From NCBI RefSeq assembly GCF_963853765.1, contig NC_088860.1:47802001-47866000 (forward strand): DNA of 64,000 nucleotides, in the 5' to 3' direction. The stretch's first letter is position 1, and each line of letters opens with the position of its first letter. Below the pieces are notes generated by a model, which had not been told where the DNA came from, made no database searches, and saw only the letters and a program-made list of their open reading frames with translations. The position numbers and the translations under genes were made by a program. Positions 9,991 through 60,993 of the stretch are shown one piece after another. This DNA comes from Magallana gigas (lineage: Eukaryota).

Positions 9991-11466
9991 GACTGGAAAC
10001 TTTTGTCTGCTAATTACCTTGATGTCAACCAGTTGGCAGCATGTATTTAAATACGTCTCAATATAAGTGAAAACTTTGTTACTTGCATGTCTTTATTATT
10101 CAATTCGTTCATGATACTTTTACGTATGGGTATATTATAACAAACATGCTCATTCATATTTTGCATGTATTTTACTTGTTACAGTCATCAAATAGCAGTC
10201 AAATCATCTCAGATATCGCTGTCAGCCAACACTCATTACTGCACTCGCTGAGAGGGAGAGAGAGCCTCATACTTCACTGCTCCACTGACCACAAATAGGC
10301 AGTATAACTGCTGCTTCAACGAAGACAAATTGGTACCGGTACTTATATGTGCAAATTTTGTTCTTTTATATGTTTTAATATATTGTAATTCGTCCCCCTC
10401 TTTTAAATGAAATTATATGTCAGGAAGACAATTGGTGCCCCTAACGCCACAGTTCTGATCTGATGTGCCACTATATTGTTGACGCCAAATTTAAAAGGCT
10501 ACGTGCTGATATTAAAGAAAACATTGATATTGTTTTGTTTTAAGTTTTATTAATGAAATAATCGTCAAGTATTCATAAGCAATATTATTATATATATCTG
10601 TGTCAATATACTCATTGTCTAAATACATTTTCAGAATCTTTAAATCAGTTCTGCAAAACTCCAAGATGGAAACACCAAGGGACAAAATATTCCACACAAG
10701 GATTCTATTAAGTCAGAACAAAAGATACAAGATTAGCAGGAAATCAAACATCTACCCTAATTCTAAAGGTTTAAAGGTAAGTCAAAACAGTTGTCTCATT
10801 GGATGTGAATTCTGACTGGGTTAATATACAGGTACCACTCCTCTTTATAAGTGATGGGCCTCAGTCCCTTTGTGGCCTCGCTCCATTGCTGGTGAAGATT
10901 CGAGTGCTATCTGTCTGTTAACCCATTATGTGTAATTAAAACATGTCACACCGAGTTTGCTGATAACCACATGTAACAAATACAGTCCATTCATTCTAAT
11001 GGAACAAACACAGATTATAGACACAGTCAAAACAGTCACTTTATATAATTATACATCTATAAATAGAAAAAGGAGTTTGTTTATATGTAATATACATGTA
11101 CATAGAATCACTTGATATATAAATATGTATAAACATGGTCTGTTTCCTTGAGATTTGATATGCAATATTAAAGAACAATTTGTTTACATACAAACATATG
11201 ATATATAAACAAATAAAGATTAAAGAAATGGAATGATTGACTAATGAAAACCTAACACAGATACAGCTAGACAGTCTGTTTACATCTTGTAGACACGGTC
11301 AGTGTATGTGTGATACATTAAATTATCCACACACAGCGTCATACACAGCTGATACACACCGTATGATGACATGTAATGTGTATAGTTTGTTTACATTATA
11401 TGTACACACAGTATGTAATAAATACTTATACGCTTTGTTTACTTATAATTTATACAGTTAGTTGAT

Positions 11467-11861
11467 TTACATGTTATATTGTATTTTCTTCACTTTACCT
11501 GTGCCCTGCTCAGCCACAAAGAGGTTGTCTCTGGTGTCCACACATAAACCCAATGGATTCTGTAAATGACAGTTGTCAATGTAGCGGAGGAACTGTCCGT
11601 TCTGATCCAGGATGTGGACACAGTTGTTCCAAAAGTCTGCTGTCAGGATCCGACCCTGGCTGTCTGTTGTGATGCCGAGTGGACTAAATGATTCCATGGT
11701 AGTAGAGGGAGGACCAGTGTAGGTAAACCGTAGTTTCCCGGCCTGATTGACCACCACTACTGCATCGGCTCCAAAGTCTGACACACAGATATTTAGGTTC
11801 CTGTTCTCACTGATGTATTTTATGTAACCAGATGAATAGAGAGGATGTCCTTTGACGTCGT

Positions 11862-11897
<36 letters not shown>

Positions 11898-13134
11898 ACA
11901 CAACTTTTGTTTGTTTATCATCATCACTGTTCATGACAACCAGGAGGTCACCAGAGGAGGTACTACAGACACTGCGAGGTTTCCACCCCCGTAGTCTGAT
12001 CACTGTCTGTATCTGTGTATTCTTCACTATGTTCACAGTTCTATCACCGTCATCAGTATAAACTAGATCCCCACTCCTTGTCACTGCTGTGTCCCGTGGA
12101 CCGTTCCCTGACTTGGTTTGGATGGACTCCACTAGTTCCCCCTGCAGGTTGAAGAGTTTCATCATGCTGTCATTACCACGCGTCCATACTTCTCTATCAT
12201 TCAGACAAGTCACACCATATATATATTCATACCCTGTGTCTAAAGCTGTGATGACCCGGGGTACATCCATTAGTGACCGGTCTGGGGGAGAGGACTCGGC
12301 TCCCTGGGGCGGCATGCTGTAGTCTTGTTCCTCTGTTGTAAAAGATAATGCGGACAGAGAACCAAACTGTTTAATCAGCTGATCTGTGTGGATTTCCTGA
12401 GGCCTAAAGTTTGGTAAGGACACTTTGAGTTTAGGAGGCAATCTTCTAAATTCAGCATTCCTGGACTTGTACTCAGAGACAAGGCTGACATCTTTAGAGT
12501 TCAGTAACTTCTTCAGTTCAGCAATGGTCTGTGTGATTTTAGAAATGGTGCGTGTGATTTCATCGTCCTGTTTATTCAGGACGACCAGGTGTTTGGATTC
12601 CATTTCTTCCACATTAGATTTCAGTTTTGTGATAATGATGTCTATTTCTCTGTGCCAGACTTTTCCTTGTTTGTCAATTGCTGTTGTCAATTTCCGGGAG
12701 TTTTTACTCAGATCAGCTTTCTGCACTGGGATGTCTGATGCAATCTCTTTGTATTTAGCATAAATGAATTTTTCTAATTCTTGCAAATCTTTTTGTAAAA
12801 TTTCTGTTTTGTTTTCAAAGCTTTGGAAAATGTCAACTTGTATATGACCTAAATGTTTTTTAGTAGAAATACACTTTGCACAAATAGGAATGTCACATTG
12901 TTCACAGTGGAGTTCACATTGTTTGGTGGGGTGTTTCCTACACTTGGGATAGTTCAGAGTGGTTAAGTATTGTTTAAGTGGCACCACATTATGGACTTTA
13001 GAGGAATCAGAGAAATGGGTCTCTACACAGTCTTTACACAGATGTATATGACAAACTTCACAGTACATGGGGGCCACAGAGTCCTGACACAGGGTGCAGC
13101 GTACAACATCCTGGGCACTGTTCCAGGGGTCCAT
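11467..13134 (-). CDS. RING-less TRIM-like protein (2 B-boxes, coiled coil, NHL beta-propeller), copy 1, 555 aa
   Basis: B-box1 CTLC...[13 protein letters not shown]; B-box2 CRKH...[13 protein letters not shown]...HLGH; heptad region; NHL blades such as [16 protein letters not shown] and [16 protein letters not shown]. Single intact coding exon. Confidence 0.93.
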
Positions 13135-13170
13135 GGTCAGGGAACCCTTGTAACTATAGGGGAACTAAAC

Positions 13171-13444
13171 CTGAAAAGTAATATTCAGTATGTATATATG
13201 ATGTATACGTTTATTATCTTGATTTGAGTAATTCTATCTCTATACATGTATTAGTAGGAATTAGAAATTCCATTGCATGCAGTACACTTTCATTTTTGGT
13301 CATACAATTTGAAAGTCATTTGCTTTTTTCTTTACTATTTATGAAAAAATTATGAATTTAACAAATATAAGGCATAAAAATCATTAGTCCAAAGATTTTA
13401 GATTATTTAGAAAACACAGTAAGAAGGTGGATTATAAAACTTAC
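13171..13444 (-). other. Predicted 5'-UTR intron of TRIM-like copy 1
   Basis: Minus-strand donor AG|GTAAGT at 13444 and acceptor TTACTTTTCAG at 13171, 36 nt upstream of the ATG; conserved in copy 2. Confidence 0.65.
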
Positions 13445-13767
13445 CTAACGCTACCCCATTGGTAAACTACAAATCTTCACGATCCAACATGGCAGGCGTC
13501 AGGTGTTTATTCTTCCTGGTTGGTTGCTACCTGTGCAAGTGACGTGATCAAATTAAATGCCAGTTACAAACTTGTGCTTGTATATGTGTTGGTCTAGAAT
13601 CGAGGTCACCCATTGTTGGGAGGTTTAAATATATCTGACATTCTTTATCACCGCTGAGCTATAGATATATTTAATTCAGCTTTAAAATGTAGGTTATTCA
13701 TTTGGTTTGATAATACATTGGGTTTTGTCTTAAGATTCTGCTGTTCAATAGATAGTTCTCTATAAAA

Positions 13768-13836
13768 GCTGATGTGGTGTAATGGTGCACACATTCCTTT
13801 GAGAATGAAGAGTGGGTTCAAATCCCACCATCAGCT
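13768..13836 (+). ncRNA. tRNA-like cloverleaf (Gln-TTG-like) with a 6-nt anticodon loop
   Basis: Acceptor stem GCTGATG/CATCAGC; D arm GTG-TAATGGTG-CAC; anticodon stem CATTC/GAATG around CTTTGA; variable loop AAGA; T arm GTGGG-TTCAAAT-CCCAC. A-box and B-box-like motifs present. The loop is one base short of canonical. Confidence 0.65.
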
Positions 13837-14080
13837 TACAAATTTAGTGAAGTATAAATGTATTTAAATGTGTAATGTGTGGATGTTTATATGAAGAAAA
13901 AAAGCGCAAATGTGACCTTATCAGCAATTAATTATTAAAGGTCATTGTGGTGAACAAAATTTGAACATTTTTACTGAAAATGCTTATCCAATTATATAAC
14001 TACATTGCATGTAGTTATGTCAGAGCGGATCTAGAGAAGGAAATGGAAGACAAGCATCAGGATACCCAACCCCTTGAAAA

Positions 14081-14992
14081 ACTAGAGGTACTGTGAGCAA
14101 GCTCACAATTGATACCCCCCGCTAAGATAAAAATCATAATGCGTGTATTTTTCCAATTATAGAAAATATTGGATGAATCTATTTCACCGTCTAATTTCTT
14201 TAAATAACAACTGCTCTATTTTTTTTTAAACTGTTGGTCATAAGCAATATTTGTGTGAAGTAAGAACATTCAATGCTTCTCCATAAGAAAGATAATGACC
14301 GGACACAAATTTTGCACTTTTTCTGCCAGTGACCTTAACCTTGCCCAAATGACCTAGGGTCAAGGTCATGACACACCCTTTGGTCCTAAGCAATATTTGT
14401 GTGAAGTTAGAACATTCAATGCTTCTCAATAAGAAAGATAATGACCGGACATGAATTTTGCACTTTTTTCCCAACGACCTTGACCTTGCCCAAATGACCT
14501 TGGATCAAGGTCATGACACACCCTTAGGTCATTAACAATCTTTGTATGAATTAAGATCTTCAAATGTTTCTCCATAAGAAAGATTTGGACCGGACAAAAA
14601 TTTTGCACTTTTTCTGCCAGTGACCTTGACCTTGCTCTAATGACCTTGGTTCAAGGTCATGACACACCCTAATGTCATAAGCAATCTTTGTATGAAGTAA
14701 GAACTTCCAATGTTTCTCCATAAGAAAGATATGGACCGGACACGAATTATATATTTTTTCTGCCAGTGACCTTGACCTTGCCCGAATGACCTTGGGTCAA
14801 GGTCATGACACACCCTTAGGTCATAAGCAATCTTTGTGTGAAGTAAGAACTTCCAATGTTTCTCCATAAGAAAGATATGGACCGGACACGATTGCACAGA
14901 CAGACGGACGGACAGACAGACGGACGGACGGACGGACAGACGGACAAGGTGATTCCTATATACCCCCGCAAACGAAGTTTGCGGGGGGTATA
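14081..14992 (-). mobile_element. Second Helentron/HINE-type element with ~146-bp internal tandem repeats
   Basis: Minus strand 5' end TATACCCCCCGCAAACTTCGTTTGCGGGGG followed by (GTCC)n and 4-5 repeats of ~146 bp; 3' end GCGGGGGGTATC plus the hairpin TGTGAGC-TT-GCTCACA. Empty site CCCTTGAAAAATAAAAATTACC near 39557-39578. Confidence 0.88.
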
Positions 14993-15368
14993 ATAAAAAT
15001 TACCAAATGAACATGCTAGACTTGTCAAAAATAAGTCTTAGACTACCCATCCCCACCCCCTGCAAGCAAGATCAGTATTCAGACCCACCATCCAACTATT
15101 ATGACAGATGTGCCATTTAGATTCCAGTGCAAACAATAACAACCCCCTGAGAAATTAAAGGTTATTTTGTTTGGGGCCTAGTTTTTTTTTATTAATATAA
15201 CAAATAATTCTCCGCCCCTAATTTCCATGGATGCGACCTATCGACCTCAGATTTCAGTCTGATGGAATGAGGGTGACGCGACACAGCCGGGTATCCAGCG
15301 TGGCTTGTTGTCCCGTGTCAGAGAAATCCGTGGGGCTGGTGGTGTCAGAAATATGTATATTGTGTCCT

Positions 15369-15811
15369 CAGGCTTGGGGCGAATTACATTGTAAAGTAAT
15401 GCATTACATTACCATTACTTCATGAATTAGGGCATTAAATTACCATTACCATAATGATTACTTTGTGAAAAGTCAATAAGTTTTAAAAGAGTAATTTAAA
15501 AGCTAAATAAAGAGTTTTTGTAAATGTTTCAAAAAATAAAACATGTTTATAAACATATTTACAGGTTCATGTTCACTATCAGGTTCAAATTTAATGACTT
15601 ATACAAGATTACTGTTGCACTATATGATCAAAGTTTCACAGGTTTAATCTTTCAACTGCATCCTGATCCTGTCGGGTGTGAAAATCTAAGATACATGTAT
15701 ATATATATATATTTTTTTGTTTAGGTAATAATAGAAAATATATGAATCTTGTATTTTCTATCAGTCCAAACTGTTGTACTTACATGTAATACATGTATAC
15801 AATTACATTAC

Positions 15812-15868
<57 letters not shown>

Positions 15869-16565
15869 TGTAAAATTATTATTTTCAAATGGTTCATAAT
15901 ACTGAAAGTAATTTTTAAGCTTCAAGAGATCCTGGTTGGACAGTGCATTCTTTTTATTGCATTCATTTTTGCTTTTAAATAAGGGTGTATGTCTGTTCTC
16001 CATTCTAATGTAGCCAATAGAAGGGTGGTTATGGGGTGTTTAGCACCTCTTTAAACAATAGAATGTTTTGATACTTAGAACAACACTGTGTACTGTTGAC
16101 ACATTCTTCACAGTAAAGAATTCATTGAATGTACATGTACAACTAATTGGAGTACATTTTTCAAATGATTTGAATTTCTTAATAAGACACTCTTAAAATG
16201 TTATGAAATTGTGTTGATATAGCTAGTTATATTGACAATTTAAGAATGGATTTTTAATTTTTTTTAACATGCTTAATCATACAACTAAAATATTTTTATC
16301 TCAAGAATTATTTTTCTTCTTTAAAAACAATTTTTAATCAAATACAGTTATTCAATTCATCACGATTTTACAAATAAACATGCATTGAAAAGCATAGTAA
16401 TGCAAAGTAATGCCATGTAATGCCAGCATTATACTAGATTTTGGAAGTAATGCATTACATTACCATTACTTGTAATGCTTAAATTACACATTACTAGCAT
16501 TACTTTGAAAATATGTAACGAATTGCAATGCATTACCATTACATTTAGCATTACCCCAAACCCTG
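15369..16565 (+). mobile_element. Non-autonomous TIR element (CAGG...CCTG), 7-bp TSD GTGTCCT
   Basis: Imperfect TIRs CAGGCTTGGGG / CCCCAAACCCTG, subterminal (CATTA)-like repeats, TSD at 15362-15368 and 16566-16572. Confidence 0.75.
15815..15866 (+). repeat. (AG)n microsatellite
   Basis: Perfect AG run; a shorter allele lies near 40375-40410. Confidence 0.95.
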
Positions 16566-18031
16566 GTGTCCTGGGATTTGATTCTTCTGAGTTGTGGAGT
16601 CAGTAAATACGATCTATTTTCTATGTTCAATGTAATCTGATTAAAGTACAATCCACTAAAGTGCAAGAGATATGATAATGACCCATTCCAGTTCATGTAT
16701 TGACGTAAGAATGAACTGAGTTGAGTTTCGTCATAATATAAAACTTATTAGTAAGACACTTTTCAATATACGACTTGCATTACAGATTGACTCCGAGCCA
16801 GGACCGGTGTAACGACGAAAAGTGACCCCCGTAGAATATTGACCCGCGGGTTAAATTTCTACGGAGAAAACTGATCCAGAGTCAGTGTGTTCTATGACAA
16901 GTAGGGTCCTTTTCCTACAGTAGAAAACCATTCAAGACCTGTAGATCTACGACCCCCACACGTTGAGAGCTGACCCCCATAGAATTTGACCTCACTTATA
17001 AACTACATAGAAATTAAAGGCGATACGTTTAGCATTCATGTTTTGTAAGTGTCCCCGGGGGGGGGGGGGGGATGCGCCTCCCGTTTTACCCTTTTACATA
17101 TATAACATCACTTTGAAGTTTTTATCTGAAGTACTTGTCAGCTTGCCTTGTGGCGCCCCTTCGCTAAGCCTTTTCAGGGTCCCCCCGGGGTATATATATG
17201 CATTATGATGTGCTCGCATGCGCTCTCTCTGCATTATGCTCGCTTTGCTAAATAGGCCCCATTATTATAACAGATGATTTAATAGACAAACCTAAACTTC
17301 ATGACTACGAATTGCATATTTTAGAAGAAGAAAAACAGAAGACGGATGTGAAATTTCGACAATTAAAGCAAATTTAGTATCTGTTCCATTTAGCTTAATC
17401 TGATTAAAATCAGATCCTCGATGCTCCTGGATGATTTTAATCAGATTGCTTGAAACCTCTTCTTTGACCTGATCTTAAAAACTGTTCAAGTCCCCATTGG
17501 TTCTTGGGAAGAAGGAAAACTTGAATATACGTCTCGATATGTTGGTGGCTGACGGCATTTGCTGACCCTTGTCCTACTATCACCTAGTGTTAAAGTAAGA
17601 CGTTGCTGGATACTAAGCTGCGTATATATATCGATTAGGTACGTCGTTGCTGCATGCTGATGCAAAAAACCTCCTCCAAAGCTTTCAGAAACTACTTTAA
17701 AAAACTGTCAAAAAGTTTTAAATGTACCATGAATATTGTTGCATTTTTCAACCCCTTCATTTTGAGGTCCGCAGACCTATGCTGAATATTTTTTCGTTAA
17801 TGCAAAACAATGATATTAGAATCCTAGGGCTATTTTTAAAAGTAGAACTTTGTATACCCCCCCCCCCTCCCCCAGCATGCCTCGGGCAAGCTTAATGGTA
17901 TTTATTCCGAGCCTCTCATCTAATTTAAATCTGGATCCGCGCATGTAGTCAACAGAAATAAATTATCCGGGAATCATTTCTGTTCACATTTGTTTCTACA
18001 TTTAGCTTGCATTTATTTACTTCCTATTAAA

Positions 18032-19859: not shown

Positions 19860-21594
19860 CTAGGATACAGGTTTCAGATCCATGATTTGATTGGTTAATT
19901 TAGATATTGAATCTCGAATCTCGTATTTCGAATCTCGTATTTTGAATCTCGAATCTCGAATGATCCTTCTCGGCTTTCGTACCAAAGAGTACTTACCAAC
20001 ACAATTAAGGTATTGCTGCCAATGCTCATCAAATTTGACAAACAAAACAAATGGTTGTGAGAATCTATGCCGACAGAGTTCTATGATATTTTGAACTCTG
20101 TGGTAACAGCCTATGTTGTAGAAATAAACACCCATAGAGAGAATTTGGGACACGGGGCCTATATTAGAAGACAGTCGTAACATGCTCATGACCATTTTGT
20201 TTGCTTTGTAACATGCTTTATTCCTGTTGCTTTTAGAGTGATTTGCCAGTATAAAGCCCGTCTGAACAAGAATGTCCGACAGCGCATGTTGTAATGCTAA
20301 ATTTTGGATACAAGAGAGTGGTATTTCAAATAGGTATGTGACTGCCCTTAGTATCACGTGACATTTTTCTTTAGAGTTAATGTAATAATCCTTTGGCATT
20401 ATTCTGTTAAAAATATATTTTTCCAACTTATATTGTGATAAAGCATGGCCTTCTGTGAAAGGTTTAACAAACAATGGATTATAAATTGCCGGCGCTAGAA
20501 TAGAATTCAAAGAAGGACTAAAAAGCAGACAGGCCACGCTTATTTCATAGTAATCATAAAGTTCGGAGAGCAACGCTTCGCGGGAAGCACCAACCACTTT
20601 GTGCATAAACATGTTGTTTTCTGGAACAAAGAAGTTTGGGCAGCAAGCATCAAATACACACTTACACAAACGTTTGAAACACATCCAGAAACAACAAAAT
20701 AAATTAGAAGGACACCAAATTATGTTGTCCGGATAGTTTTGAATCTCCCAGAACAAAATTGTTTTCAGAAAGTAGGAACAAATTAATGATTCTCGTTTTC
20801 CCAAACACAGAATTTCATTTAAAAATATTTTCAAAATCCCATAGCAAAGAAACTGAGTATGATTAAATGAATAAATAATTTTTTGTTCTGCTTGGGTAAA
20901 GGAAAGTCTCCATTCAAGTTCACTTTCATCAGAGCCTAAATTACCAATAGGCATAACATGACATCCTTTGGGTATGATATCATTAAGAACAATTTCGGTT
21001 GGCCATCGATTTAACTGGCATCTAGTTATCCAAGGTGTGGCTGTTTGAGGCCAATATTGACAAGCAATGCATCCACCGAAATCATTCTCAAAACCAAACG
21101 CATGAAAACTATTACAAGGTCCATGAGGTTGCACATTTTTTGCAATGGTCCCAAAACAGATAATTTCGTAACGTGTCTCTAAATTTTTTACTTGATAGGT
21201 AAAAACCATTGATATGATTTTCTGTCGACTGTAAAAAAACCATTATTTCTCCTTGAGTGTAATTCAAAAGTTTTAATCTCACAAAACCTGGAGGGGCGTC
21301 TGAATGTTCCATGAGTATTGAAAATATGTCGGAAACATTGAAATTGGACATCCCACAGATAACTTTACACCTAGTTGGCCAAAACATTACATCTATGTCT
21401 GATGATTTGAATATGAAACCTTCTCTATAACTACCACTTTGTACGAATATGACTCCCTCATTTAAATATACTCTTCTGTGTATAATCTCATCAACATCCA
21501 TTAGCTCCCTCCTGATGACTACTTCTGTGGGTGTCCCTATTTGACGACACAAACCCACGTACATGGCTTCCGATACCCGTCGACAATCATCCAT
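19860..21594 (-). pseudogene. Mab-21/cGAS-like receptor (cGLR) paralog A, frameshifted and 3'-truncated
   Basis: ATG at 21594, 8 nt after a CTGTAG acceptor. NTase motif SGSYREG...SSDIDVM, third Asp in ENDFGGCI, Mab-21 motifs EWRLSF and CSYFLKTILFW. Frameshift near 21160; C-terminus replaced near 19975 by (GAATCTC)-like repeats. Confidence 0.88.
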
Positions 21595-22505
21595 CTTGTA
21601 ATCTACAGTTGAACAACAAACAAAAAAGATGAAAAAAAAAAAACAAGACAAAACGCATTTAAATTTTTATGCTCAACAATACGGTTATTATACAGGGTCG
21701 TAGGAAAAATTTCCTTCAAAATTATGAACACTTTAAAATGTCATAATCAAATGGGTTACGGAAAGGTTTTAATAGTTTAAAGGTTAGGTTTTAATAATCT
21801 TTGATATGTGTTTTTAAAAATGAATCTTTTAATAATTACTAAAATCCAATTTTACTGGTCATGCAACATTCTCAAGGTCTACTATGAAGACACAAGGAAA
21901 TACTGAAATAACTATGATATCAGAGAGAACAAAAAGTCATAAAAAATGATCAAAAATAAAGTATTTGACAATTGTAATATGTACAAAAACCTGAAACTAC
22001 GTTAACAATTACCTCTGCATTAAACATCGTAGTAAAATAAGTCCAACAAAGTGTAATATAAACAACTTACTGATTGTAATGCACATATTGATTGGAAATC
22101 AAACTGTTAATTTTTTACTCATCAATTTTTGAAAATGACAAAATGCATTTTATAAATTAACGAAACATAGCCCCCAAGCAATTAGTGTACAATTTAATTT
22201 TGTTTATATGGCTTTCTTTTATTCAGCCTGTAATTTTTTAGAGGGTGTTTTTTTTAGTGTTTAATATACAAGTTTGAAATTTATTTACATAGGGAAGCCA
22301 ATTTAAATCCGCTTTTAAAAAGGACATACACTTTTAAATATTTAATTCTTTAGAACATGTGTTAAGAGGATGCTTATTTTATTTTTAAAAAGCAGCTGCT
22401 GCAATTTAATCTATATAATAAGTCAATGAATATGTAAAATGTTAAACGTGGGTCATAATTTCAGGCGGATCTGTAATTGTTAAAGTTTACTAGACATGAT
22501 CTCCA

Positions 22506-37314: not shown

Positions 37315-37372
<58 letters not shown>

Positions 37373-38620
37373 ATCATCATCACTGTCACTCTCACTATCA
37401 TCTTTATCATCACTGTCCATGACAACCAGGAGGTCACCAGAGGAGGTACTACAGACACTGCGAGGTTCCCACCCCTGTAGTCTGATCACTGTCTGTATCT
37501 GTGTATTCTTCACTATGTTCACAGTTCTATCACTGATGTCAGTATAAACTAGATCCCCACTCCTTGTCACTGCTATGTCGTATGGATGGTTCCCTGACTT
37601 GGTTTGGATGGACTCCACTAGTTCCCCCTGCAGGTTGAAGAGTTTCATCATGTCGTCATCACCACGCGTCCATACTTCTGTATCATTCAGACACGCCACA
37701 CCGTATAGATGTCTATACCATGTGTCTATAGCTGTGATGACCCGGGGTACATCCATCAGTGACCGGTCTGGGGGAGAGGACTCAGCTCCCTGGGGTGGCA
37801 TGCTGTAGTCTTGTTCCTCTGTTGTAAAAGATAATGCGGACAGAGAACCAAACTGTTTAATCAGCTGATCTGTGTGGATTTCCTGAGGCCTAAAGTTTGG
37901 TAAGGACACTTTGAGTTTAGGAGGCAATCTTCTAAATTCAGCGTTCCTGGACTTGTACTCAGAGACAAGGCTGACATCGTTGGAGTTCAGTAGCTTCTTC
38001 AGTTCTGCAATGGTCTGTGTGATTTTAGAAATGGTGTGTGTGATTTCATCGTCCTGTTTATTCAGGACGACCAGGTGTTTGGATTCCATTTCCTCCACGT
38101 TAGATTTCAGGTTTGTGATAATAGTGTCTATTTCTCTGTGCCAGACTTCTCCTTGTTCGTCAATTGCTGTTGTCAATTTCCGGGAGTTTTTACTCAGATC
38201 AGCTTTCTGCACTGGGATGTCTGATGCAATCTCTTTGTATTTAGCATAAATGAATTTTTCTAATTCTTGCAAATCTTTTTGTAAAATTTCTGTTTTGTTT
38301 TCAAAGCTTTGGAAAATGTCAACTTGTATATGACCTAAATGTTTTTTAGTAGAAATACACTTTGCACAAATAGGAATGTCACATTGTTCACAGTGGAGTT
38401 CACATTGTTTGGTGGGGTGTTTCCTACACTTGGGATAGTTCAGGGTGGTTAAGTATTGTTTAAGTGGCACCACATTATGGACTTTAGAGGAATCAGAGAA
38501 ATGGGTCTCTACACAGTCTTTACACAGATGTATATGACAAACTTCACAGTACATGGGGGCCACAGAGTCCTGACACAGGGTGCAGCGTACAACATCCTGG
38601 GCACTGTTCCAGGGGTCCAT
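36923..38620 (-). CDS. RING-less TRIM-like B-box/coiled-coil/NHL protein, copy 2, 565 aa
   Basis: First 154 aa identical to copy 1; NHL region divergent with an acidic insertion; intact ORF. Confidence 0.93.
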
Positions 38621-38656
38621 GGTCAGGGAACCCTTGTAACTATAGGGGAACTAAAC

Positions 38657-38930
38657 CTGAAAAGTAATATTCAGTATGTATATATGATGTATACGTTTAT
38701 TATCTTGATTTGAGTAATTCTATCTCTATACATGTATTAGTAGGAATTAGAAATTCCATTGCATGCAGTACACTTTCATTTTTGGTCATACAATTTGAAA
38801 GTAATTTGCTTTTTTCTTTACTATTTATGAAAAAATTATGAATTTAACAAATATAAGGCATAAAAATCATTAGTCCAAAGATTTTAGATTATTTAGAAAA
38901 CACAGTAAGAAGGTGGATTATAAAACTTAC
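38657..38930 (-). other. Predicted 5'-UTR intron of TRIM-like copy 2
   Basis: Same AG|GTAAGT donor and TTTTCAG acceptor as copy 1. Confidence 0.65.
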
Positions 38931-39253
38931 CTAACGCTACCCCATTGGTAAACTACAAATCTTCACGATCCAACATGGCGGGCGTCAGGTGTTTATTCTT
39001 CCTGGTTGGTTGCTACCTGTGCAAGTGACGTGATCAAATTAAATGCCAGTTACAAACTTGTGCTTGTATATGTGTTGGTCTAGAATCGAGGTCACCCATT
39101 GTTGGGAGGTTTAAATATATCTGACATTCTTTATCACCGCTGAGCTATAGATATATTTAATTCAGCTTTAAAATGTAGGTTATTCATTTGGTTTGATAAT
39201 ACATTGGGTTTTGTCTTAAGATTCTGCTGTTCAATAGATATTTCTCTATAAAA

Positions 39254-39322
39254 GCTGATGTGATGTAATGGTGCACACATTCCTTTGAGAATGAAGAGTG
39301 GGTTCAAATCCCACCATCAGCT
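39254..39322 (+). ncRNA. Second copy of the tRNA-like cloverleaf
   Basis: Identical to 13768-13836 except G10>A, which weakens the D stem. Confidence 0.55.
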
Positions 39323-40371
39323 TACAAATTTAGTGAAGTATAAATGTATTTAAATGTGTCATGTGTGGATGTTTATATGAAGAAAAAAAAAGCAAATGTG
39401 ACCTTATCACCAATTAATTATTAAAGGTCATTGTGGTGAACAAAATTTGAACATTTTTACTGAAAATGCTTATCCAATTATATAACTACATGGCATGTAG
39501 TTATGTCAGAGCGGATCTAGAGAAGGAAATGGAAGACAAGCATCAGGATACCCCACCCCTTGAAAAATAAAAATTACCAAATGAACATGCTAGACTTGTC
39601 AAAAATAAGTCTTAGACTACCCATCCCCACCCCCTGCAAGCAAGATCAGTATTCAGACCCACCATCCAACTATTATGACAGATGTGCCATTTAGATTCCA
39701 GTGCAAACAATAACAACCCCCTGAGAAATTAAAGGTTATTTTGTTTGGGGCCTAAGTTTTTTTTATTAATATAACAAATAATTCTCCGCCCCTAATTTCC
39801 ATGGATGCGACCTATCGACCTCAGATTTCAGTCTGATGGAATGAGGGTGACGCGACACAGCCAGGTATCCAGCATGGCTTGTTGTCCGGTGTCAGAGAAA
39901 TCTGTGGGGCTGGTGGTGTCAGAAATATGTATATTGTGTCCTCAGGCTTGGGGCGAATTACATTGTAAAGTAATGCATTACATTACCATTACTTTATGAA
40001 TTAGGGCATTAAATTACCATTACCATTACTTTGTGAAAAGTCAATAAGTTTTAAAAGAGTAATTTAAAAGCTAAATAAAGAGTTTATGTAAATGTTTCAT
40101 AAATAAAACATGTTTATAAACATATTTACAGGTTCATGTTCACTATCAGGTTCAAATTTAATGACTTATACAAGATTACTGTTGCACTATATGATAAAAG
40201 TTTCACAGGTTTAATCTTTCAACTGCATCCTGATCCTGTCGGGTGTGAAAATCTAAGATACATGTATATATATATATATATTTTTTTTTGTTTAGGTAAT
40301 AATAGAAAATATATGAATCTTGTATTTTCTATCAGTCCAAACTGTTGTACTTAATACATGTATACAATTAC

Positions 40372-40413
<42 letters not shown>

Positions 40414-40547
40414 GTAAAATTATTATTTTCAAATGGTTCATAATACTGGAAGTAATTTTTAAGCTTCAAGAGATCCTGGTTGGACAGTGCATTCTTTTTA
40501 TTGCATTCATTTTTACTTTTAAGGGTGTATGTCTGTTCTCTATTCTA

Positions 40548-41048
40548 CAATGCCGCTCTATGAAATACAATCTTGTGTTTACGGGGCTAGGTGGGGAAAC
40601 AAAGGAAGAGGACACGGAGGGCAAATTGCGGGACTTCATATATTTTGAATTAGGAGTTGACTGGAGAGTGGAGTTCTGTAACGTACATCGGTTCGGTCGA
40701 TTTCAACAGAACAGGAGCAGACCCATCGTTGCGAAATTCCTTTATGAAAATGACCGAGTAAGTGTTCTAGAAAGAGCCTATAAATTAAAAGGAAGTGGAT
40801 TCGGCATAAATGAACAATTCCCGCACGCTATTGAGGAAAGACGAAAACAACTCTATCCTATCATGAGGGAACTCAGAAGTCAAGGAAAGAGAACCAAACT
40901 AGTGAAAGATCGTCTGTATGTGAACGGAAAGTTATATAAAGGTCCAGAAAGCAGAGACGAACACCACACAGGAACTCCAGATAATAGACAACAACGCCAC
41001 GCAGCCACACACGCGCAACACATAACTCGATCGACAGGAGCACAATGA
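40548..41048 (+). CDS. LINE ORF1 C-terminal part (L1-type RRM/CTD-like), 5'-truncated
   Basis: RSMKYNLVFTGL...VHRFG...RPIVAKF...GINEQFP...DRLYVNG. The ORF-track segment upstream of 40548 is host DNA. Confidence 0.85.
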   Translation, partial: QCRSMKYNLVFTGLGGETKEEDTEGKLRDFIYFELGVDWRVEFCNVHRFGRFQQNRSRPIVAKFLYENDRVSVLERAYKLKGSGFGINEQFPHAIEERRKQLYPIMRELRSQGKRTKLVKDRLYVNGKLYKGPESRDEHHTGTPDNRQQRHAATHAQHITRSTGAQ

Positions 41049-41156
41049 CGATCCAACGAAACAGCAGGACGGCATGAAAGACAGACTACACATCCAGCGA
41101 CCGCGTACAGTACAGTCACCTCCAACACGTACACTGGACATTCTACCGGTCACTAG

Positions 41157-44100
41157 GACAGGCTCGGGAGTAGGAGTGAGGATTTATCTATCATCGCATG
41201 GAATGTTAATAAAGGCCTAAAAACTAAACTAGATAATCTAGACTTTGTAGAACTTATAATAAAATATGATATAATTATTTTATTAGAATGTTGGATAAAT
41301 CAAGATGATTGTTTCGATCTACATGGATATAATAATTACAGTTTTCATAGAACAAATGGAAAAGGAGGTGGCATTGTTATCTTTATTAAAAACATGTTAG
41401 ACATGAACATATCAATTGTAGACCAATTTTGTAGTACTGTTGTGTGGATACGTTTTGAACTTAAAAGTAAACAAGGTACACCCATTTTTGTAGCCGCATG
41501 TTATATACCCCCAGAAAGTAGTGTGTTTTATAAAAAAGAGAAAGTTGATATTTTTGATTATTTAGAAGATTCTTATTGTAGTTTTCACCGTAAAGGTCAT
41601 ATATATGTGGTAGGGGACTTTAATGCCCGGTGTGGAACTTTGGATGATTTTATTTCTGATGACAAGCTTGAAAAGTCAGTAGAAAAGAATTTACAGTCAT
41701 TTGTAGACTATGACAATAATGCCAATGTATACTGTAGACATAATGCAGACAGAGGAGTTAACAACTTTGGTAAAAAGTTGATTAATTTGTGTAGAACTAC
41801 AGGATTGAAAATTGTTAATGGAAGAAATGAAAATGACTATAATGGTAATATCACTTTTTATAACGCCAATGGAACTAGTACGATAGATTATTTACTTACA
41901 GATGTGTACAATTTTGACAATATTACTTATTTTTCAACAGGTATTTTTAACTGCTTCTCCGATCATGCACCTGTTTCTTTTTGTATTAAAACTAACTACA
42001 TAGATGGGGGATCAAAAGCCTTGTGCTGTGCAAACACTTCACAAGGGAACGGGAGTATAAATCAATGTACTTCAGTTAGATGGAAAGAAGGTGCTGATTT
42101 AGAAGCTACGTGGTCAATAAGTGAACACTATGATTTATTTTTGTCATATGTAGAAAACCAGTTATATACACAAGAAGATGTTGACAATTGTGTAGCGAAT
42201 TTTAGTAAGACACTCTGTAAAATAATGAAGCCCTATTGTATTATCACTGGTGGACTGGCAAATACGGTTATAGATGCAGAACGTTGTATTGATAAACCCT
42301 GGTTTAATGATATTTGTAAATCAAAATACCGTGATTATAGAGGTGCACTGCATAATTTTAATGTATTCAAGTCGGATGTAAATAGAATTGTACTTTGTGC
42401 AAAGAAAAAGGTTTATAAAAAAACAGTCCAGAAGTTTAAGCATAACTACGAACGATATCAGGGAGACAGAATGGAATACCTAAGAAAATGTAACCCAAAG
42501 CAGTTTTTTCGTTTATTTAAGAATAATAAAAAAATCAGTTGTGATGTAAGTGCCAAAGAGTTTTTTGAGCATTTTAAGAACCTTTTTGAAAATGTAAAAA
42601 CTACTACTTATGACAACACTAGTGATGATTATGAAATATTACCATGTTATAAAGAGTTAGATGTGTGTATTTCAGAATTAGAGGTTGAGAAAGCTATTTT
42701 GAAACTGAAAAGTAACAAGAGTAATGCTGAAGATGGTGTAATTAATGAATTTTTTTCGAAATGTAAAGAGGTTATGATACCTATTTTGTGTAGACTTTTT
42801 AATAATATATTCGACTCTGGTTTTTACCCAGACAATTGGTCAAAAGGTTGTATTGTACCAATTTTTAAAAAAGGTGAAATGCAAGATTTAAACAATTATA
42901 GAGGTATCACATTAGTTAGTTGCTTGGCAAAACTATTTACAAGTATTATAAATACTAGATTGTTAGAATGGGACCAGAGATATAATATCATTACTGATGC
43001 TCAGTTTGGTTTTAAACCAGGGGTAGGTACAATTGATGCCATATTTGTACTACAGAATCTCATAAGTAGAACTTTAAAAAACAAAAAAAGATTGTACTGT
43101 TGTTTTGTGGATTATACAAAGGCCTTTGACTTAATTGATAGATCAAAACTATGGTATAAATTGCAAATGGAGGGTTTTGGAGGAAAATTATTACGTATTA
43201 TTAAGTCTCTATATAAAAATGTAAGAGCATGTGTTAAACATAAAGGTACATTTACAGAAACATTTAGAATCTCAGCTGGAGTTCTACAAGGTGAAATATT
43301 GTCTCCATTATTATTTTCAATGTACCTTAATGATTTTGAAAGATATTTTATAAATAGTAATTGTACATCAATTGAATTACAAATGATTAATATGTTTTTA
43401 ATTATGTATGCTGATGATACTGTCCTTTTGGCAGAATCGCCCGAGGGTTTACAGGATATGCTGAACACATTGCACAGATATACTGATGAATGGAACTTAT
43501 CTGTTAATGTACAAAAAACCAAAATTGTAATTTTTAGAAACGGAAAATGTGTTAAAGATAATGAAAAATGGGAATACAATAGCAAATACGTAGAAGTAGT
43601 GAATCAATTTAACTATCTTGGTATGTTGTTTAACTACAATGGTAAATTTTTATCTACACAAAAGCACTGTGCAGCACAGGGAAATAAAGCAATGTTCAGC
43701 ATATCTAGTAAAATGAAAGATTTGAATTTTAATGTTGAAACTCAATTGAATGTTTTTGATACTTATGTAAAAAGTGTACTTAGTTATGGTGCTGAAATTT
43801 GGGGATTCCATAAAGGTCAAGATGTAGAAAAAGTCCATATAAATTTTTGTAAGAAGGTTTTGGGTGTCAGAAAAAATACTTGCAACAGTGCAGTTTATTA
43901 TGAAGTAGGTAGATTTCCATTAGAGATTTTCAGGAAACAAAAAATTTTTAAATACTGGTTTAAATTAAGAAACAGTAAAAACTGTATTTTAAAAGCATGC
44001 TACGAAGACATGGTGAAAAATAATGACATATGGATTTCAAATATTAGGAAAGAATTGTCCATCTTAGGCTTAGCCGATTTATATCAACCAGTACTATGAA

Positions 44101-44587
44101 AGAGTCTGTTATTTTAGATATTATATTTAAAAGAATGTGTGATGTCTTTAAACAAAAAGTTGTTAACGATATAAGCAATGCATCAAAATGTATATTATAT
44201 AAACATGTTGTTGATCATTTTTGTTTACAAGTTTACCTAAAGAAACCAATTCATGTAAAATATCGTAAATTAATTACACGCTTACAGTTGTCCTCACATG
44301 ACTTAAAGATTGAAACAGGAAGGTATGATAATTTAACACGTGATTGTCGAAAATGTGAATCTTGCAACTTAAATGTAATTGAAGATGAGTTCCATTTTTT
44401 ACTTATTTGTCCATCACTTTGTAGTTTAAGAGATAAGTATATTAAAAAATACTACTCCCGAAAACCAAGTGTCTATAAAGTTATACAGTTATTATCTACC
44501 TCTAATACTAAAGAACTGTGTAATTTAGGTAAATATTTATATTATGCAAACAAGCAACGAACTCTCCATGTGAATTATCCAAATTGA
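41157..44587 (+). pseudogene. LINE ORF2 (APE endonuclease, RT, C-terminal Cys/His motif) with one frameshift near 44090
   Basis: IIAWNV, LLECW, GDFNAR, STIDY and SDHAPV; QGEILSP and YADD; second piece SSHDLKIETGRY...CESC...EDEFHFLLICP at 44096-44587. The frame is open from 41157, upstream of the first ATG at 41394. Confidence 0.88.
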
Positions 44588-45900
44588 TTATGTACACTTT
44601 GTTTTTCTTACTGTTTATTTAATATGTATATGTTCATATGTATAACCTATGAGACATTTGTCTCTTGGAATAAAGAACTTGAATTCTAATGTAGCCAATC
44701 GAAGGGTGGTTATGGGGTGTTTAGCACCTCTTTAAACAATAGAATGTTTTGATACTTAGAACAACACTGTGTACTGTTGACACATTCTTCACAGTAAAGA
44801 ATTCATTGAATGTACATGTACAACTAATTGGAGTACATTTTTCAAATGATTTGAATTTCTTAATAAGACACTCTTAAAATGTTATGAAATTGTGTTGATA
44901 TAGCTAGTTATATTGACAATTTAAGAATGGATTTTTAATTTTTTTTAACATGCTTAATCATACAACTAAAATATTTTTATCTCAAGAATTATTTTTCTTC
45001 TTTAAAAACAATTTTTAATCAAATACAGTTATTCAATTCATCACGATTTTACAAATAAACATGCATTGAAAAGCATAGTAATGCAAAGTAATGCCATGTA
45101 ATGCCAGCATTATACTAGATTTTGGAAGTAATGCATTACATTACCATTACGTGTAATGCTTAAATTACACATTACTAGCATTACTTTGAAAATATGTAAC
45201 GAATTGCAATGCATTACCATTACATTTAGCATTACCCCAAACCCTGGTGTCCTGGGATTTGATTCTTCTGAGTTGTGGAGTCAGTAAATACGATCTATTT
45301 TCTATGTTCAATGTAATCTGATTAAAGTACAATCCACTAAAGTGCAAGAGATATGATAATGACCCATTCCAGTTCATGTATTGACGTAAGAATGAACTGA
45401 GTTGAGTTTCGTCATAATATAAAACTTATTAGTAAGACACTTTTCAATATACGACTTGCATTACAGATTGACTCCGAGCCAGGACCGATGTAACGACGAA
45501 AAGTGACCCCCGTAGAATATTGACCTGCGGGTTAAATTTCTACGGAGAAAACTGATCCAGAGTCAGTGTGTTCTATGACAAGTAGGGTCCTTTTTCTACA
45601 GTAGAAAACCATTCAAGACCTGTAGATCTGCGACCCCCACACGTTGAGAGCTGACCCCCATAGAATTTGACCTCACTTATAAACTACATAGAAATTATAG
45701 AAATTAAAGGCGATACGTTTAGCATTCATGTTTTGTAAGTGTCCGGGTGGTGGGGGGGGGGGGGGGGGTATGCGCCTCCCGTTTTACCCTTTTACATATA
45801 TAACATCACTTTGAAGTTTTTATCTTGAAGAACTTGTCAGCTTGCCTTGTGGTGCCCCTTCGCTAAGCCTTTTCAGGGTCCCCCCGGGGTATATTACAAA

Positions 45901-47661
45901 ATGGCGACAGCCAGCGGTGGTCGCTTAGACGAGGATCCAAACTTTTCCTCAATTAATGCCTACAGAGATTGCGACAATGCCCTACAATGTGCACCAGTCA
46001 ACGACAGCAGAAGTAATCTTCTAACCGATGTTCTAAATGTTGAGGAATCTGTGCTGAATTGCACATTATTGCAGTTGTTTACATCTGAGGGCGTGAGTAC
46101 TTCTTACGATAACAATGTCTACGATTTGCCAAACTCGCAATTGCCTATTATCGAGAACGAAGGTTTATCGAACGCTGAGTATATCAATCTTATTGATTCC
46201 CAACTTCAGAATTTACCAAAAGAAATTTATGTTAATAAATTACTTGAACTTCTTGATGACGATGAGAACAAAATCATGTGGTATAGAAACGTTCTTTACT
46301 CCCGGGCAAAAACCCTCCCCGACTGCCCTCCTGGCAGACTTAAAAGTAGAAGAACTACTAAAAGTAACAACAGTACTGAAAGATATGCAAGAGACTGTCA
46401 CACTTTATACATGTTTACCCAAGGGGAAAAATCGGGATTGAATGTAATTTTTGACAAAAGCAAAACATTACCAGTCCCTTCCGATACATTCAAGCATGAA
46501 ACCTCAAAAATTGAGTTAGATGAATTTTGATCATTGCTGCAATTATTACAACAGCGACTATCCGAATTAGAAGAAAATATTCAATCCAAAGACAAAACAA
46601 TTCATATCCTGACCGCTGACCTCAAATCACTTCACTTGAAACATGACCAACTATCTACAGAACATGAGCGTTTCAAAGCTGAGGCGAACTGTAGGTTCAC
46701 TAAATGCGACTGCTTTCAGAAATTGGCAAAAGAGAAATTCCAAAAAGCCGAAACCGATTTGATGGAGTTTGAATCTTTCAAATCAAAAACTAATGACGAA
46801 CTCAAACGTGTAAATAAAGTTACTCAAAACTTTCAAAATAAAGTCAACGCACTCAGCCCAAATAAATCATACGCCAGTGCTGTAGTCGAACAAACTGCCA
46901 ATGAACGGTCCATTAAAGAAAACTCTACAACATCTCGTGGAAATGACGCCATAGTCGATGGAATTCGTTCTATACGCGACTCAATGGATAATCCGTCTAA
47001 ACCCAAGACGTCTGATACCGATGGTAAAACTTGTGCCGATAGAGATGTTGCTGCGTGTGCACCGGTGGCCAACGATTCACCCCGTCGGGTTCCTCAAGAA
47101 GCCAGACACAATGCACATTCAATCGACACCTCTTCATTCAACTCGCCACGCTCCAATAGTCATACTATTACGACAGCTGGTCTCAAATACGCAAAAAATA
47201 GAGACTCTTCTCCAGAGAGCATAACGCCCAAAAGATCAGTGAATTACGATGGTGTTTTGTGTCGCGTAACTGTTGACGAAAAACCACGCTCAGTTCAAAA
47301 TACCGTATCTAAACAAACAAAAGATGTCTTTCTCGGAGTTACATACAAGAAGGCAGCCCGATATTATTTGTCCGGAATAAACCATGAATCAACCTACGAA
47401 GGCATCAAAACTTATGTTGAAAGCAAAGGGGTTAAAATCTCGTACTTAACCCTATTCAAACCAAAAGGGCGCTACTCAGTCCGGACAGCCAAAATCAACG
47501 TCTCGCCAAATTGCTCACAAACTGTAGAAGCACCGGGATTCTGGCCCGACGGTGTCCACTGCCGCAAGTGGTATAGTGAGCGCGAGTGGGATTCTCGTTG
47601 TGACCAAAGGTACCCGCAGACAGACGACGAACGGGCATATCAAGACAGTCATTACCATTAA
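45901..47661 (+). pseudogene. ORF1 of unit 1, broken by TGA at 46528-46530
   Basis: In-frame pieces; unit 2 has CGA (Arg) at this codon. Confidence 0.9.
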
Positions 47662-47668
47662 ACCAATT

Positions 47669-50600: not shown

Positions 50601-51178
50601 ACGAACTCACAGACCACTTAAAACAGTGGCTACATGACGGTTCATTCCCTGGAAAAATAACATGGAAAAAAATTGTGAGGACCGCCGTTTCAACTCTATA
50701 CAAGTCACAGCGTCAAACTCGTATATCAAATGATTCTGACTTCTTAACTTTTCGTCTGATCTTCGACGACATAGATCCCTCATCACTCTGGAAACTCCCC
50801 AGAAACTGTTACGAGATCAACCTGTGTAAATTTGTATGCAAACTCATCTCCAACACCCGCGAGTGCATCAACGTATACACTTGTCTACTGTGCCAAAGGC
50901 CCTTCAAAAACTTAATTGCGCATGCTTCGTGCACATGTGCAGCAACCGAAACCATCCGAGATGTATGGTGGGAGAAGGTCATCAACTTATACGACATAAG
51001 ACTGTCGGCGGAACTGTGTGGCCTTGCCGAGGACGACTTCCTCGTTATTCTTTTGGGGCGACGAACTGATACACCGCTTGAAAGCTCAGCAACAGCATCT
51101 TTTCGCATGCTCAATTACAGGCTCCTAAAAAACACTGTAGCCTTATACAATAAGGCATTATCATTTCAATGTATGTGA
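47669..51178 (+). pseudogene. ORF2 of unit 1 with two in-frame TAA stops (49334-49336, 50594-50596)
   Basis: MSWNVRG, LSEH, GDLNG, LDY and SDHLP; AFDTVW, QGGVLS and LADD; C-terminal CLLC...HASCTC. All three ORF-track pieces share one frame. Confidence 0.92.
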
Positions 51179-51233
51179 CAATATGATTTATTTACTGGCA
51201 TGCCCATGCTCTTTTGTATATATGTTCGGATAT

Positions 51234-51268
<35 letters not shown>

Positions 51269-52567
51269 TTCATTTATTTACTGATGTTTTGTTTGTAATA
51301 ATAATTTGATATGTTATAATTTGATCATCATGATCCTCTACGGAGGGAAATAAATTATGAATGAATGAAAAAGGGTGGTTATGGGGTGTTTAGCACCTCT
51401 TTAAACAATAGAATGTTTTGATACTTAGAACAACACTGTGTACTGTTGACACATTCTTCACAGTAAAGAATTCATTGAATGTACATGTACAACTAATTGG
51501 AGTACATTTTTCAAATGATTTGAATTTCTTAATAAGACACTCTTAAAATGTTATGAAATTGTGTTGATATAGCTAGTTATATTGACAATTTAAGAATGGA
51601 TTTTTAATTTTTTTTAACATGCTTAATCATACAACTAAAATATTTTTATCTCAAGAATTATTTTTCTTCTTTAAAAACAATTTTTAATCAAATACAGTTA
51701 TTCAATTCATCACGATTTTACAAATAAACATGCATTGAAAAGCATAGTAATGCAAAGTAATGCCATGTAATGCCAGCATTATACTAGATTTTGGAAGTAA
51801 TGCATTACATTACCATTACGTGTAATGCTTAAATTACACATTACTAGCATTACTTTGAAAATATGTAACGAATTGCAATGCATTACCATTACATTTAGCA
51901 TTACCCCAAACCCTGGTGTCCTGGGATTTGATTCTTCTGAGTTGTGGAGTCAGTAAATACGATCTATTTTCTATGTTCAATGTAATCTGATTAAAGTACA
52001 ATCCACTAAAGTGCAAGAGATATGATAATGACCCATTCCAGTTCATGTATTGACGTAAGAATGAACTGAGTTGAGTTTCGTCATAATATAAAACTTATTA
52101 GTAAGACACTTTTCAATATACGACTTGCATTACAGATTGACTCCGAGCCAGGACCGATGTAACGACGAAAAGTGACCCCCGTAGAATATTGACCTGCGGG
52201 TTAAATTTCTACGGAGAAAACTGATCCAGAGTCAGTGTGTTCTATGACAAGTAGGGTCCTTTTTCTACAGTAGAAAACCATTCAAGACCTGTAGATCTGC
52301 GACCCCCACACGTTGAGAGCTGACCCCCATAGAATTTGACCTCACTTATAAACTACATAGAAATTATAGAAATTAAAGGCGATACGTTTAGCATTCATGT
52401 TTTGTAAGTGTCCGGGTGGTGGGGGGGGGGGGGGGTATGCGCCTCCCGTTTTACCCTTTTACATATATAACATCACTTTGAAGTTTTTATCTTGAAGAAC
52501 TTGTCAGCTTGCCTTGTGGTGCCCCTTCGCTAAGCCTTGTCAGGGTCCCCCCGGGGTATATTACAAA

Positions 52568-54328: not shown

Positions 54329-54335
54329 ACCAATT

Positions 54336-57845: not shown

Positions 57846-57900
57846 CAATATGATTTATTTACTGGCATGCCCATGCTCTTTTGTATATATGTTCGGATAT

Positions 57901-57931
<31 letters not shown>

Positions 57932-60986: not shown

Positions 60987-60993
60987 ACCAATT

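Follow-up and report, generated by a model that had tools for sequence, protein, structure and literature searches.

A hypervariable NHL propeller face and a mosaic of divergence in a young pair of oyster B-box/coiled-coil genes

Related systems and the oyster gene pair

Previous work showed that the top face of the NHL domain of canonical TRIM-NHL proteins is the interface for RNA or for a partner (PMC4015489, PMC9634614). These proteins are conserved, single-copy developmental regulators with fixed faces. The teleost finTRIM/btr/hltr families and mammalian TRIM5/TRIM22, which are class IV TRIMs, are lineage-specific expanded families with recombination among members, hypervariable, positively selected loops in the B30.2 domain, and a proposed role in virus sensing (PMC3137616). 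In the fungal HNWD NOD-like receptors (NLRs; HET-D/E/R), the WD40 framework is near-identical through recombination, and a few hypervariable surface positions are under diversifying selection (PMC11761791). Here we describe a pair of genes, A and B, in a 64,000-nucleotide window of the oyster Magallana (Crassostrea) gigas, called C. gigas below. The window is the whole stretch of DNA that was analysed, positions 47,802,001 to 47,866,000 of the forward strand of contig NC_088860.1 (assembly GCF_963853765.1), and coordinates below are positions within it. A and B encode B-box/coiled-coil/NHL proteins that lack a RING finger; in contrast to the canonical TRIM-NHL genes, their family has more than 100 intronless paralogs and a hypervariable face. 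We consider it probable that a 1.3-kb block found in the pair was imported by recombination or gene conversion, and that diversifying selection acts on the propeller face of this RING-less family.

Gene A (11467..13134, minus strand) and gene B (36923..38620, minus strand) are intronless, intact open reading frames (ORFs) of 555 and 565 residues, respectively. The two proteins are 90% identical, and the exact protein of each is present in the protein database, assigned to the 51.13-Mb chromosome of assembly GCA_963853765.1. A Pfam search placed zf-B_box (PF00643) in two stretches (E 1e-10), B-box 1 and B-box 2, at residues ~12-97 of A (12844..13101, minus strand) and at the same residues of B; the Cys/His ligand residues were invariant in 54 sequences, and the AlphaFold2 (AF2) model of residues 1-296 has two small zinc-finger-like folds here, with nothing ahead of them. 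The coiled-coil helices of A occupy residues 102-230 (12445..12831, minus strand) and were modelled, in the AF2 monomer, as an unbroken helix 102-211 and a helix 214-230, with a predicted local distance difference test score (pLDDT) of 63-89. The linker, residues 231-296, is disordered by AF2 prediction. The NHL propeller covers residues 293-555 of A (11470..12258, minus strand; PF01436, AF2 and Foldseek) and residues 293-565 of B (36926..37744, minus strand; Pfam). In the AF2 model of residues 285-555 it has 24 strands in six blades, at pLDDT 93.2. The top Foldseek matches of this model were the NHL domains of TRIM2 and TRIM3 (E 1e-17, template modelling (TM) score 0.82), followed by Thin, LIN-41/TRIM71 and Brat, with TM scores of 0.75-0.82 across the TRIM-NHL structures, and a sequence profile matched the same structures (the NHL domains of TRIM2/3/71, Thin and Brat) at E 1e-29 to 1e-20. 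On these profile and Foldseek matches, TRIM2, TRIM3, TRIM71/LIN-41, TRIM32/Thin, Brat and Mei-P26 are homologous to A and B, sharing B-box and NHL.

No RING finger was found in A or B by Pfam, and the ORF and all 106 aligned relatives begin at the first B-box. Pfam likewise gave no SPRY match, the C-terminal domain being NHL. As predicted from sequence, the architecture is B-box, B-box, coiled coil, linker, NHL, with no RING, and intrinsic RING E3 (ubiquitin ligase) activity would not be expected of proteins of the A/B family. The order B-box, B-box, coiled coil, NHL without RING is that of Drosophila Brat. Of the features that define class VII TRIM proteins, A and B have the B-boxes, the long coiled coil and the C-terminal six-blade NHL but lack the RING, and, unlike canonical TRIM-NHL proteins, the oyster family also lacks a filamin domain, the corresponding residues 231-296 being predicted as disordered. 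The difference from finTRIM and TRIM5 lies in the variable domain, which in those proteins is a PRY-SPRY beta-sandwich joined to a RING E3 and in the oyster proteins is an NHL propeller without RING.

Divergence along the pair and the variable face

An initial annotation of the window claimed that the first 154 residues of A and B are identical and that the flanks outside the proximal 3' untranslated region (UTR) are nearly so. Both points hold: codons 1-154 have no nonsynonymous and one synonymous difference (codon 59), and the flanks diverge by 0.7-1.1%. A scan of a 4.1-kb alignment by 100-bp window counted 0-3 mismatches in the flanks and over the opening 460 bp of the coding sequence (CDS), 5-7 in the coiled-coil patch and as many as 11 in the NHL part. 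The ~100 nt that follow the stop had 6 mismatches (6%) and an 8-nt gap, in keeping with the claim that divergence extends that far into the 3' UTR, and the remaining 3' flank had 0-1 mismatches per window. Divergence is not uniform, then, along gene and flanks: silent divergence was 6.3% in the inner block versus 0.85% in the flanks, a 7.4-fold step (Fisher p=4e-10). As delimited by sliding window and silent divergence, the block runs from codon 155 to ~100 nt into the 3' UTR, at 11367..12672 in A and 36815..38158 in B, both on the minus strand. Its 3' edge coincides with the end of the 3' UTR stretch that is conserved across all paralogs; beyond it the paralog flank types are unrelated, and A and B become identical.

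Nei-Gojobori estimates of synonymous (dS) and nonsynonymous (dN) divergence between A and B, with their ratio dN/dS (omega), followed the same mosaic. Codons 1-154 gave dS 0.011 and dN 0; codons 155-230 gave dS 0.16, dN 0.034 and omega 0.21; the linker gave dS 0.064 and dN 0; and the NHL part gave dS 0.044, dN 0.080 and omega 1.84. Codons 155-230 are the second patch that had been noticed in the coiled coil, and they do fall within the predicted helices 102-211 and 214-230. The NHL part (residues 298 to the end) has 36 amino-acid differences, where about 35 had been counted by eye, together with an 11-residue acidic insertion in B and a one-residue indel, and the motif pairs quoted as examples (GYEYI/WYRHL, GPRDT/HPYDI, DFGAD/DRVAG, SPLG/YPRG, FWNNC/FDNHR) are all present. 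The NHL part has 45.75 nonsynonymous changes, where the flank rate would predict 5.1 (Poisson p=5e-28) and the local silent rate 29.4 (p=0.003). Two or three positions are changed in 11 NHL codons, versus 4.8 expected (p=0.009), and in two of these codons all three positions are changed. Given the silent-site step, the sharp edge at codon 155, the coincidence of the 3' end with the point where family homology stops, and the codons with multiple changes, the 1.3-kb block appears to be older than its surroundings and imported. Judged from these sequence comparisons, point mutation since the duplication cannot explain the A/B differences.

The positions at which A and B differ are those at which the whole family varies. 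In an alignment of 106 full-length members, the entropy of the NHL framework is near zero, and 24 punctate positions reach 2-3.8 bits; in A numbering these hypervariable (HV) residues are 303, 304, 321, 345, 347, 362, 363, 385, 387, 406, 437, 438, 454, 455, 457, 484, 486, 501, 502, 504, 526, 528, 543 and 544. Pairwise identity among the 106 proteins falls from 88% in the framework to 22% at the HV sites, where 98 distinct signatures occur. Mean family entropy is 1.71 bits at positions with A/B differences versus 0.39 bits elsewhere (p=1e-12). The HV sites form 12 loop patches with two or three sites per loop, and 42-79 alleles of each patch occur in the set of 106. The composition of the HV sites is skewed 3- to 5-fold toward Tyr (16%), Arg (14%), His and Trp. 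The sites are near-independent: excess mutual information amounts to 0.19 bits for sites of one patch and to 0.06-0.09 bits for sites of different patches, and the near-independence extends to sites just 4-25 residues apart.

When the HV sites were mapped on the predicted propeller, eight fell in strand 1-2 loops, 12 in strand 3-4 loops and four on the first residues of strand 2; none of the 24 fell in a strand 2-3 loop or in a loop from strand 4 to the next strand 1. The sites are thus confined to two loop types and are not scattered. Because alternate loops of an antiparallel four-strand blade share a face, all 24 lie on one face, and the earlier description of a constant scaffold with a variable sensor face agrees with this placement. 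Each repeat has x-P-x-G in strand 2 and, further on, D-x-x-N-x-R across strands 3 and 4. This is the canonical NHL motif, in which by convention the P-x-G strand is innermost, and the variable loops would then be the D-to-A and B-to-C loops. In a profile alignment to TRIM2 (chain offset 463), TRIM2 D640 falls on the conserved Asp directly before HV residues 454/455, and N594 falls one blade earlier, on the residue that opens the loop after the corresponding Asp; this loop position is hypervariable in other blades. The repeat motif and the alignment of D640 and N594 together place the variable face at the top, and it would therefore be the ligand-binding face.

The face also varies in length. 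The 33-nt insertion specific to B (37379..37411, minus strand) adds the 11 acidic residues to the strand 3-4 loop of blade 3, on the variable face, and the same loop is lengthened by an Asp/Ser-rich acidic insertion in eight of the 106 members, to 16-22 residues versus 8-10. The lengthened loops mean that the variable face differs in length as well as by substitution. The 24 HV residues of family members have net charges between -7 and +6 (mean 0.3; A -1, B +1), whereas the face of TRIM71 is uniformly positive and the RNA-binding TRIM-NHL subgroup (Brat, LIN-41) is marked by a positive top face that binds a defined RNA element. The charge range and the face rich in Tyr, Arg, Trp and His suggest that the family may bind diverse ligands and not one conserved RNA motif.

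Selection was studied in 12 CDSs, comprising A, B, the ortholog from Crassostrea angulata and nine C. gigas paralogs. Mean pairwise dS was 0.17 in the B-box region, 0.106 in the coiled coil plus linker and 0.057 in the NHL framework, where dN was 0.045; at the 24 variable codons mean pairwise dN was 0.74. As a control for circularity, the HV sites were redefined on 94 proteins outside the 12 CDSs, and the cross-validated values were dN(HV) 0.69 and dS(framework) 0.058, a ratio of 12 (bootstrap 95% confidence interval 8.4-18.6). At silent sites across the family, then, the NHL framework is the most homogeneous part of the gene, and the A/B gradient runs opposite. These sequence comparisons support, short of proof, strong diversifying selection on one propeller face, family-wide. 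In its lineage-specific expansion, its hypervariable loops on one face and its dN(HV)/dS ratio of 12, the oyster family resembles finTRIM and TRIM5. With the WD40 domain of the HNWD proteins it shares a conserved propeller framework with hypervariable surface positions, but the conservation in HNWD is between the repeats of one gene, and in the oyster it is between paralogs, the blades of A being on average 17% identical to each other (10-30%). The signalling modules differ also, NACHT in the fungal proteins and B-box/coiled coil in the oyster ones.

Origin of the divergent block

The initial annotation attributed the divergence to gene conversion from other paralogs and/or positive selection. 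The pairwise homoplasy index (PHI) test gave p=0.001 for the whole CDS and p=0.001 for the N-terminal half. In a GENECONV-like longest-run test the A/B pair reached a Bonferroni p of 0.013, and three other pairs were borderline at 0.05-0.07. Tree topologies differed between segments. In the N-terminal tree A and B were sisters at zero distance, joined next by the C. angulata ortholog (locus L001, 96%); in the coiled-coil tree A grouped with L001 and B with other paralogs (88% bootstrap); and the NHL tree was star-like with long tips, A and B being weakly sister. Among the 12 CDSs, 39 of the 70 nucleotide differences between A and B have both states in other paralogs, and the other 31 are private to A or B, private changes being about 3-fold in excess in codons 155-555. 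In blade 5, B's states match common family states (those of paralogs L002 and L003), and A's are mostly unique.

The account that we find probable would run as follows. A and B would be recent duplicates of a single member of the oyster's very large RING-less B-box/coiled-coil/NHL family, in which each paralog or allele would show a different binding surface on a constant scaffold, and the B-boxes and long coiled coil would mediate dimerisation or assembly of higher order, much as they do in other TRIM-like proteins. The 1.3-kb block would have reached A, B or both through interlocus gene conversion, or else through recombination with a divergent allele or paralog, and diversifying selection would then have kept and favoured differences at face positions.

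A number of observations weigh against this account. PHI within the NHL part alone gave p=0.62, though 59% of informative site pairs there were incompatible; since incompatibility is saturated at that level, PHI cannot tell very short tracts from recurrent substitution in this domain. Approximately unbiased (AU) tests rejected A+B sisterhood in no segment (coiled coil p=0.118), despite the differing topologies. Segment and patch comparisons found no donor of the A/B tracts among the 106 family proteins or 10 paralog CDSs, the patch alleles of A and B being mostly unique in that sample. For A/B alone, omega above 1 is marginal against strict neutrality (binomial p=0.07). The labelling of the face as top rests on fold topology and the TRIM2 alignment. 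Expression support is at the level of the family, with nothing specific to A or B. The two-copy state is found in this assembly only, C. angulata (at the one locus compared) and the other C. gigas protein set each having a single gene with this N-terminus. Finally, A has 16 rare NHL states, compared with seven in B and a family median of eight, and eight of A's are private changes at near-invariant framework positions, which may reflect relaxed constraint. Of the annotation's proposal, the conversion part is favoured by the 7-fold silent step, the sharp 5' edge and the position of the 3' end, and the selection part by the HV/framework ratio of 12; neither part is proven.

The single gene elsewhere bears on whether A and B are copies at all. 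They might be divergent alleles of one locus, brought into tandem by misassembly or by unequal crossing-over between alleles, in which case the block would be an old balanced polymorphism whose flank divergence has been erased by recombination; we hold this to be rather unlikely. The C. angulata locus L001 has one gene, with upstream DNA that matches A's (17873-15691) and downstream DNA that matches B's (32044-26409), as the allelic account would have it. The one protein with this N-terminus in the other C. gigas set, P0009, has B's acidic insertion and blade 3-4 patches and differs in blades 1-2 and 5-6, a mosaic that implies allelic variation as large as the A/B difference. Further, no public run contained more than 55% of A's NHL 31-mers. 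The L001 flanks and the self-matches of the window, however, also fit a tandem duplication with a period of ~25.4 kb. In self-BLAST, 9987-17195 paired with 35446-40547 plus 44683-45894 at 97-98%, 1228-2343 paired with 32058-33183, and 4855-5199 paired with 35101-35454. The contiguous part of the copy A unit (9987..17195) continues at 4855-5199 and 1228-2343 past a Ty1/copia-type element in its downstream flank (5199-9987; ORF 5450-9721, an intact 1423 residues with integrase and RVT_2). That of copy B (35446..40547) continues at 44683-45894 past a long interspersed nuclear element (LINE) in its upstream flank (40547-44683; ORF 41394-44099, a 901-residue endonuclease/reverse transcriptase), and also at 35101-35454 and 32058-33183. 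These insertions either postdate the duplication or differ between haplotypes. A 146-bp satellite of 4.5 copies (14236-14891) lies in A's upstream flank only, B having none between 39566 and 39567. Against alleles, then, stand these copy-specific transposons and satellite; the position of both copies on one gap-free contig (the window has no N runs), in the order B, unique DNA with two Mab-21 genes, A; and the location of the highest dS (0.16) in the coiled coil and not at the presumed selected sites. The conclusion that the face is hypervariable is the same under duplication or alleles.

If A and B are duplicates, their differences might have arisen in place by point mutation, fixed by strong positive selection without recombination. 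The A/B NHL omega, the coincidence of the differences with family HV sites and the weak A/B sisterhood in NHL trees would all suit such an origin. Against it stand the 7.4-fold higher divergence of silent sites in the block than in the flanks, the 11 codons that differ at two or three positions, the coiled-coil patch with its omega of 0.21 and dS of 0.16, and the continuation of divergence into the 3' UTR. We regard it as improbable. Drift of A, or of both copies, under relaxed constraint toward a pseudogene is more improbable still. A's rare states would be accounted for, but both ORFs are intact, B's count of rare states is typical, and the changes cluster on one face instead of being scattered. 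Neutral drift cannot, moreover, exceed the flank rate, and as a full explanation relaxed constraint is ruled out by the excess of NHL changes over the flank-rate expectation. Least credible is a dedicated germline or somatic hypermutation of the 3' two-thirds of the gene or of face codons, for which the regionally raised silent divergence, the near-independence of HV sites and the excess of private changes in codons 155-555 might be cited. For over half of the A/B differences, however, the states recur in other paralogs, the read data cannot separate paralogs from variants, and we know of no hypermutation mechanism for these genes.

Family, locus and possible function

A word-indexed protein search gave 2997 matches at E<=1e-20. 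Nearly all of the best 120 of the 2997 come from C. gigas and C. angulata; they are paralogs with identities of 77-90%, and their annotations read TRIM71-like, TRIM2-like or uncharacterized. The two species together have more than 100 paralogs at that identity. Nine paralog loci that were fetched lie at 38.6-43.1 Mb on the same chromosome as A and B. Several intronless paralogs among them (loci L004, L005, L006 and L010, at 42.9-43.1 Mb) are embedded in introns of large unrelated genes, in the orientation opposite to the host; the hosts are a TUDOR-domain gene and an exportin-4/7-like gene. These intronic paralogs suggest dispersal by retroposition or small segmental copies, beyond tandem duplication alone.

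In whole-genome unitigs of other oysters, 31-mer depth was 4,000-25,000 over the NHL framework (11492-12131) versus 100-1,900 over the B-box/coiled-coil half (12132-13200), a difference of 10-100 times. At the nucleotide level the NHL framework thus seems common to many more copies than the N-terminal half, the extra copies perhaps belonging to subfamilies with different N-termini. The Logan unitigs used were 60-200 nt long and dominated by multicopy framework, so that they resolve the family level and not copy, phase or somatic variants. In a stranded poly-A library, reads occurred only in the sense expected for minus-strand transcripts, and most were 95-99% alike, from relatives. The family is expressed; the reads assign expression to relatives and not specifically to A.

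In the unique DNA that separates the NHL genes, the minus strand has two groups of Mab-21 ORFs, one at 19860-21651 and the other at 26903-28334. The two groups share ~78% identity, have nucleotidyltransferase and Mab-21_C domains and are cGAS/cGLR-like. The locus may be a small cluster of expanded innate-immune-type genes, made up of the NHL pair and Mab-21. The window also contains a 166-bp satellite of seven copies at 2618-3836, diverged relatives of which are found beside paralog L002. The stretch from 44702 to 64000 is a macrosatellite of about three 6.67-kb units that are 99.8% identical, the unit being made of LINE ORFs and 1.19 kb matching 16021-17195, the upstream end of the duplicated unit; this macrosatellite abuts copy B and replaces its upstream flank.

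As to function, innate receptor is a candidate label for A and B that comes from sequence, and the family looks like a germline repertoire of candidate variable binding proteins. Hypothetically, what is recognised would be non-self, for example viral RNA or protein. A bolder reading, which we put forward tentatively and think unlikely to hold as a whole, is that a germline repertoire of more than 100 proteins has about 24 near-independent top-face positions that gene conversion between paralogs and between alleles continually reshuffles in very short tracts, giving each individual a largely private intracellular recognition set, directed for example against ostreid herpesvirus 1 (OsHV-1) or other viral RNA or protein. 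The composition of the face would then be antibody-paratope-like, and in this family invertebrates would have a propeller-based equivalent of finTRIM/TRIM5 and of the WD40 NLR sensors of fungi. Programmed or somatic diversification, as an extension of that reading, is less likely again. Antiviral function has been demonstrated for TRIM5 and for no member of the oyster family. Unspecified TRIM genes are among oyster OsHV-1 resistance candidates (PMC9437489) and among infection-induced genes in oyster (bioRxiv 2026.05.15.723513), and neither paper ties them to the A/B family. The literature searched did not describe a hypervariable face on any molluscan NHL domain, the oyster and bivalve results being generic mentions of TRIM.

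Bivalves tolerate heavy exposure to microbes and viruses although they lack adaptive immunity. How their recognition is diversified matters in practice for the herpesvirus mortalities in oyster farming. The young pair is a natural experiment, in that the flanks differ by less than 1% while 14% of NHL residues differ, almost all on one face. The A/B pair dates the diversification and exposes the mosaic, and it points to import or reshuffling and not to slow point mutation. In sum, the family offers about 24 candidate specificity positions on a well-folding scaffold, with which a ligand search, structural work and population genetics would be feasible.

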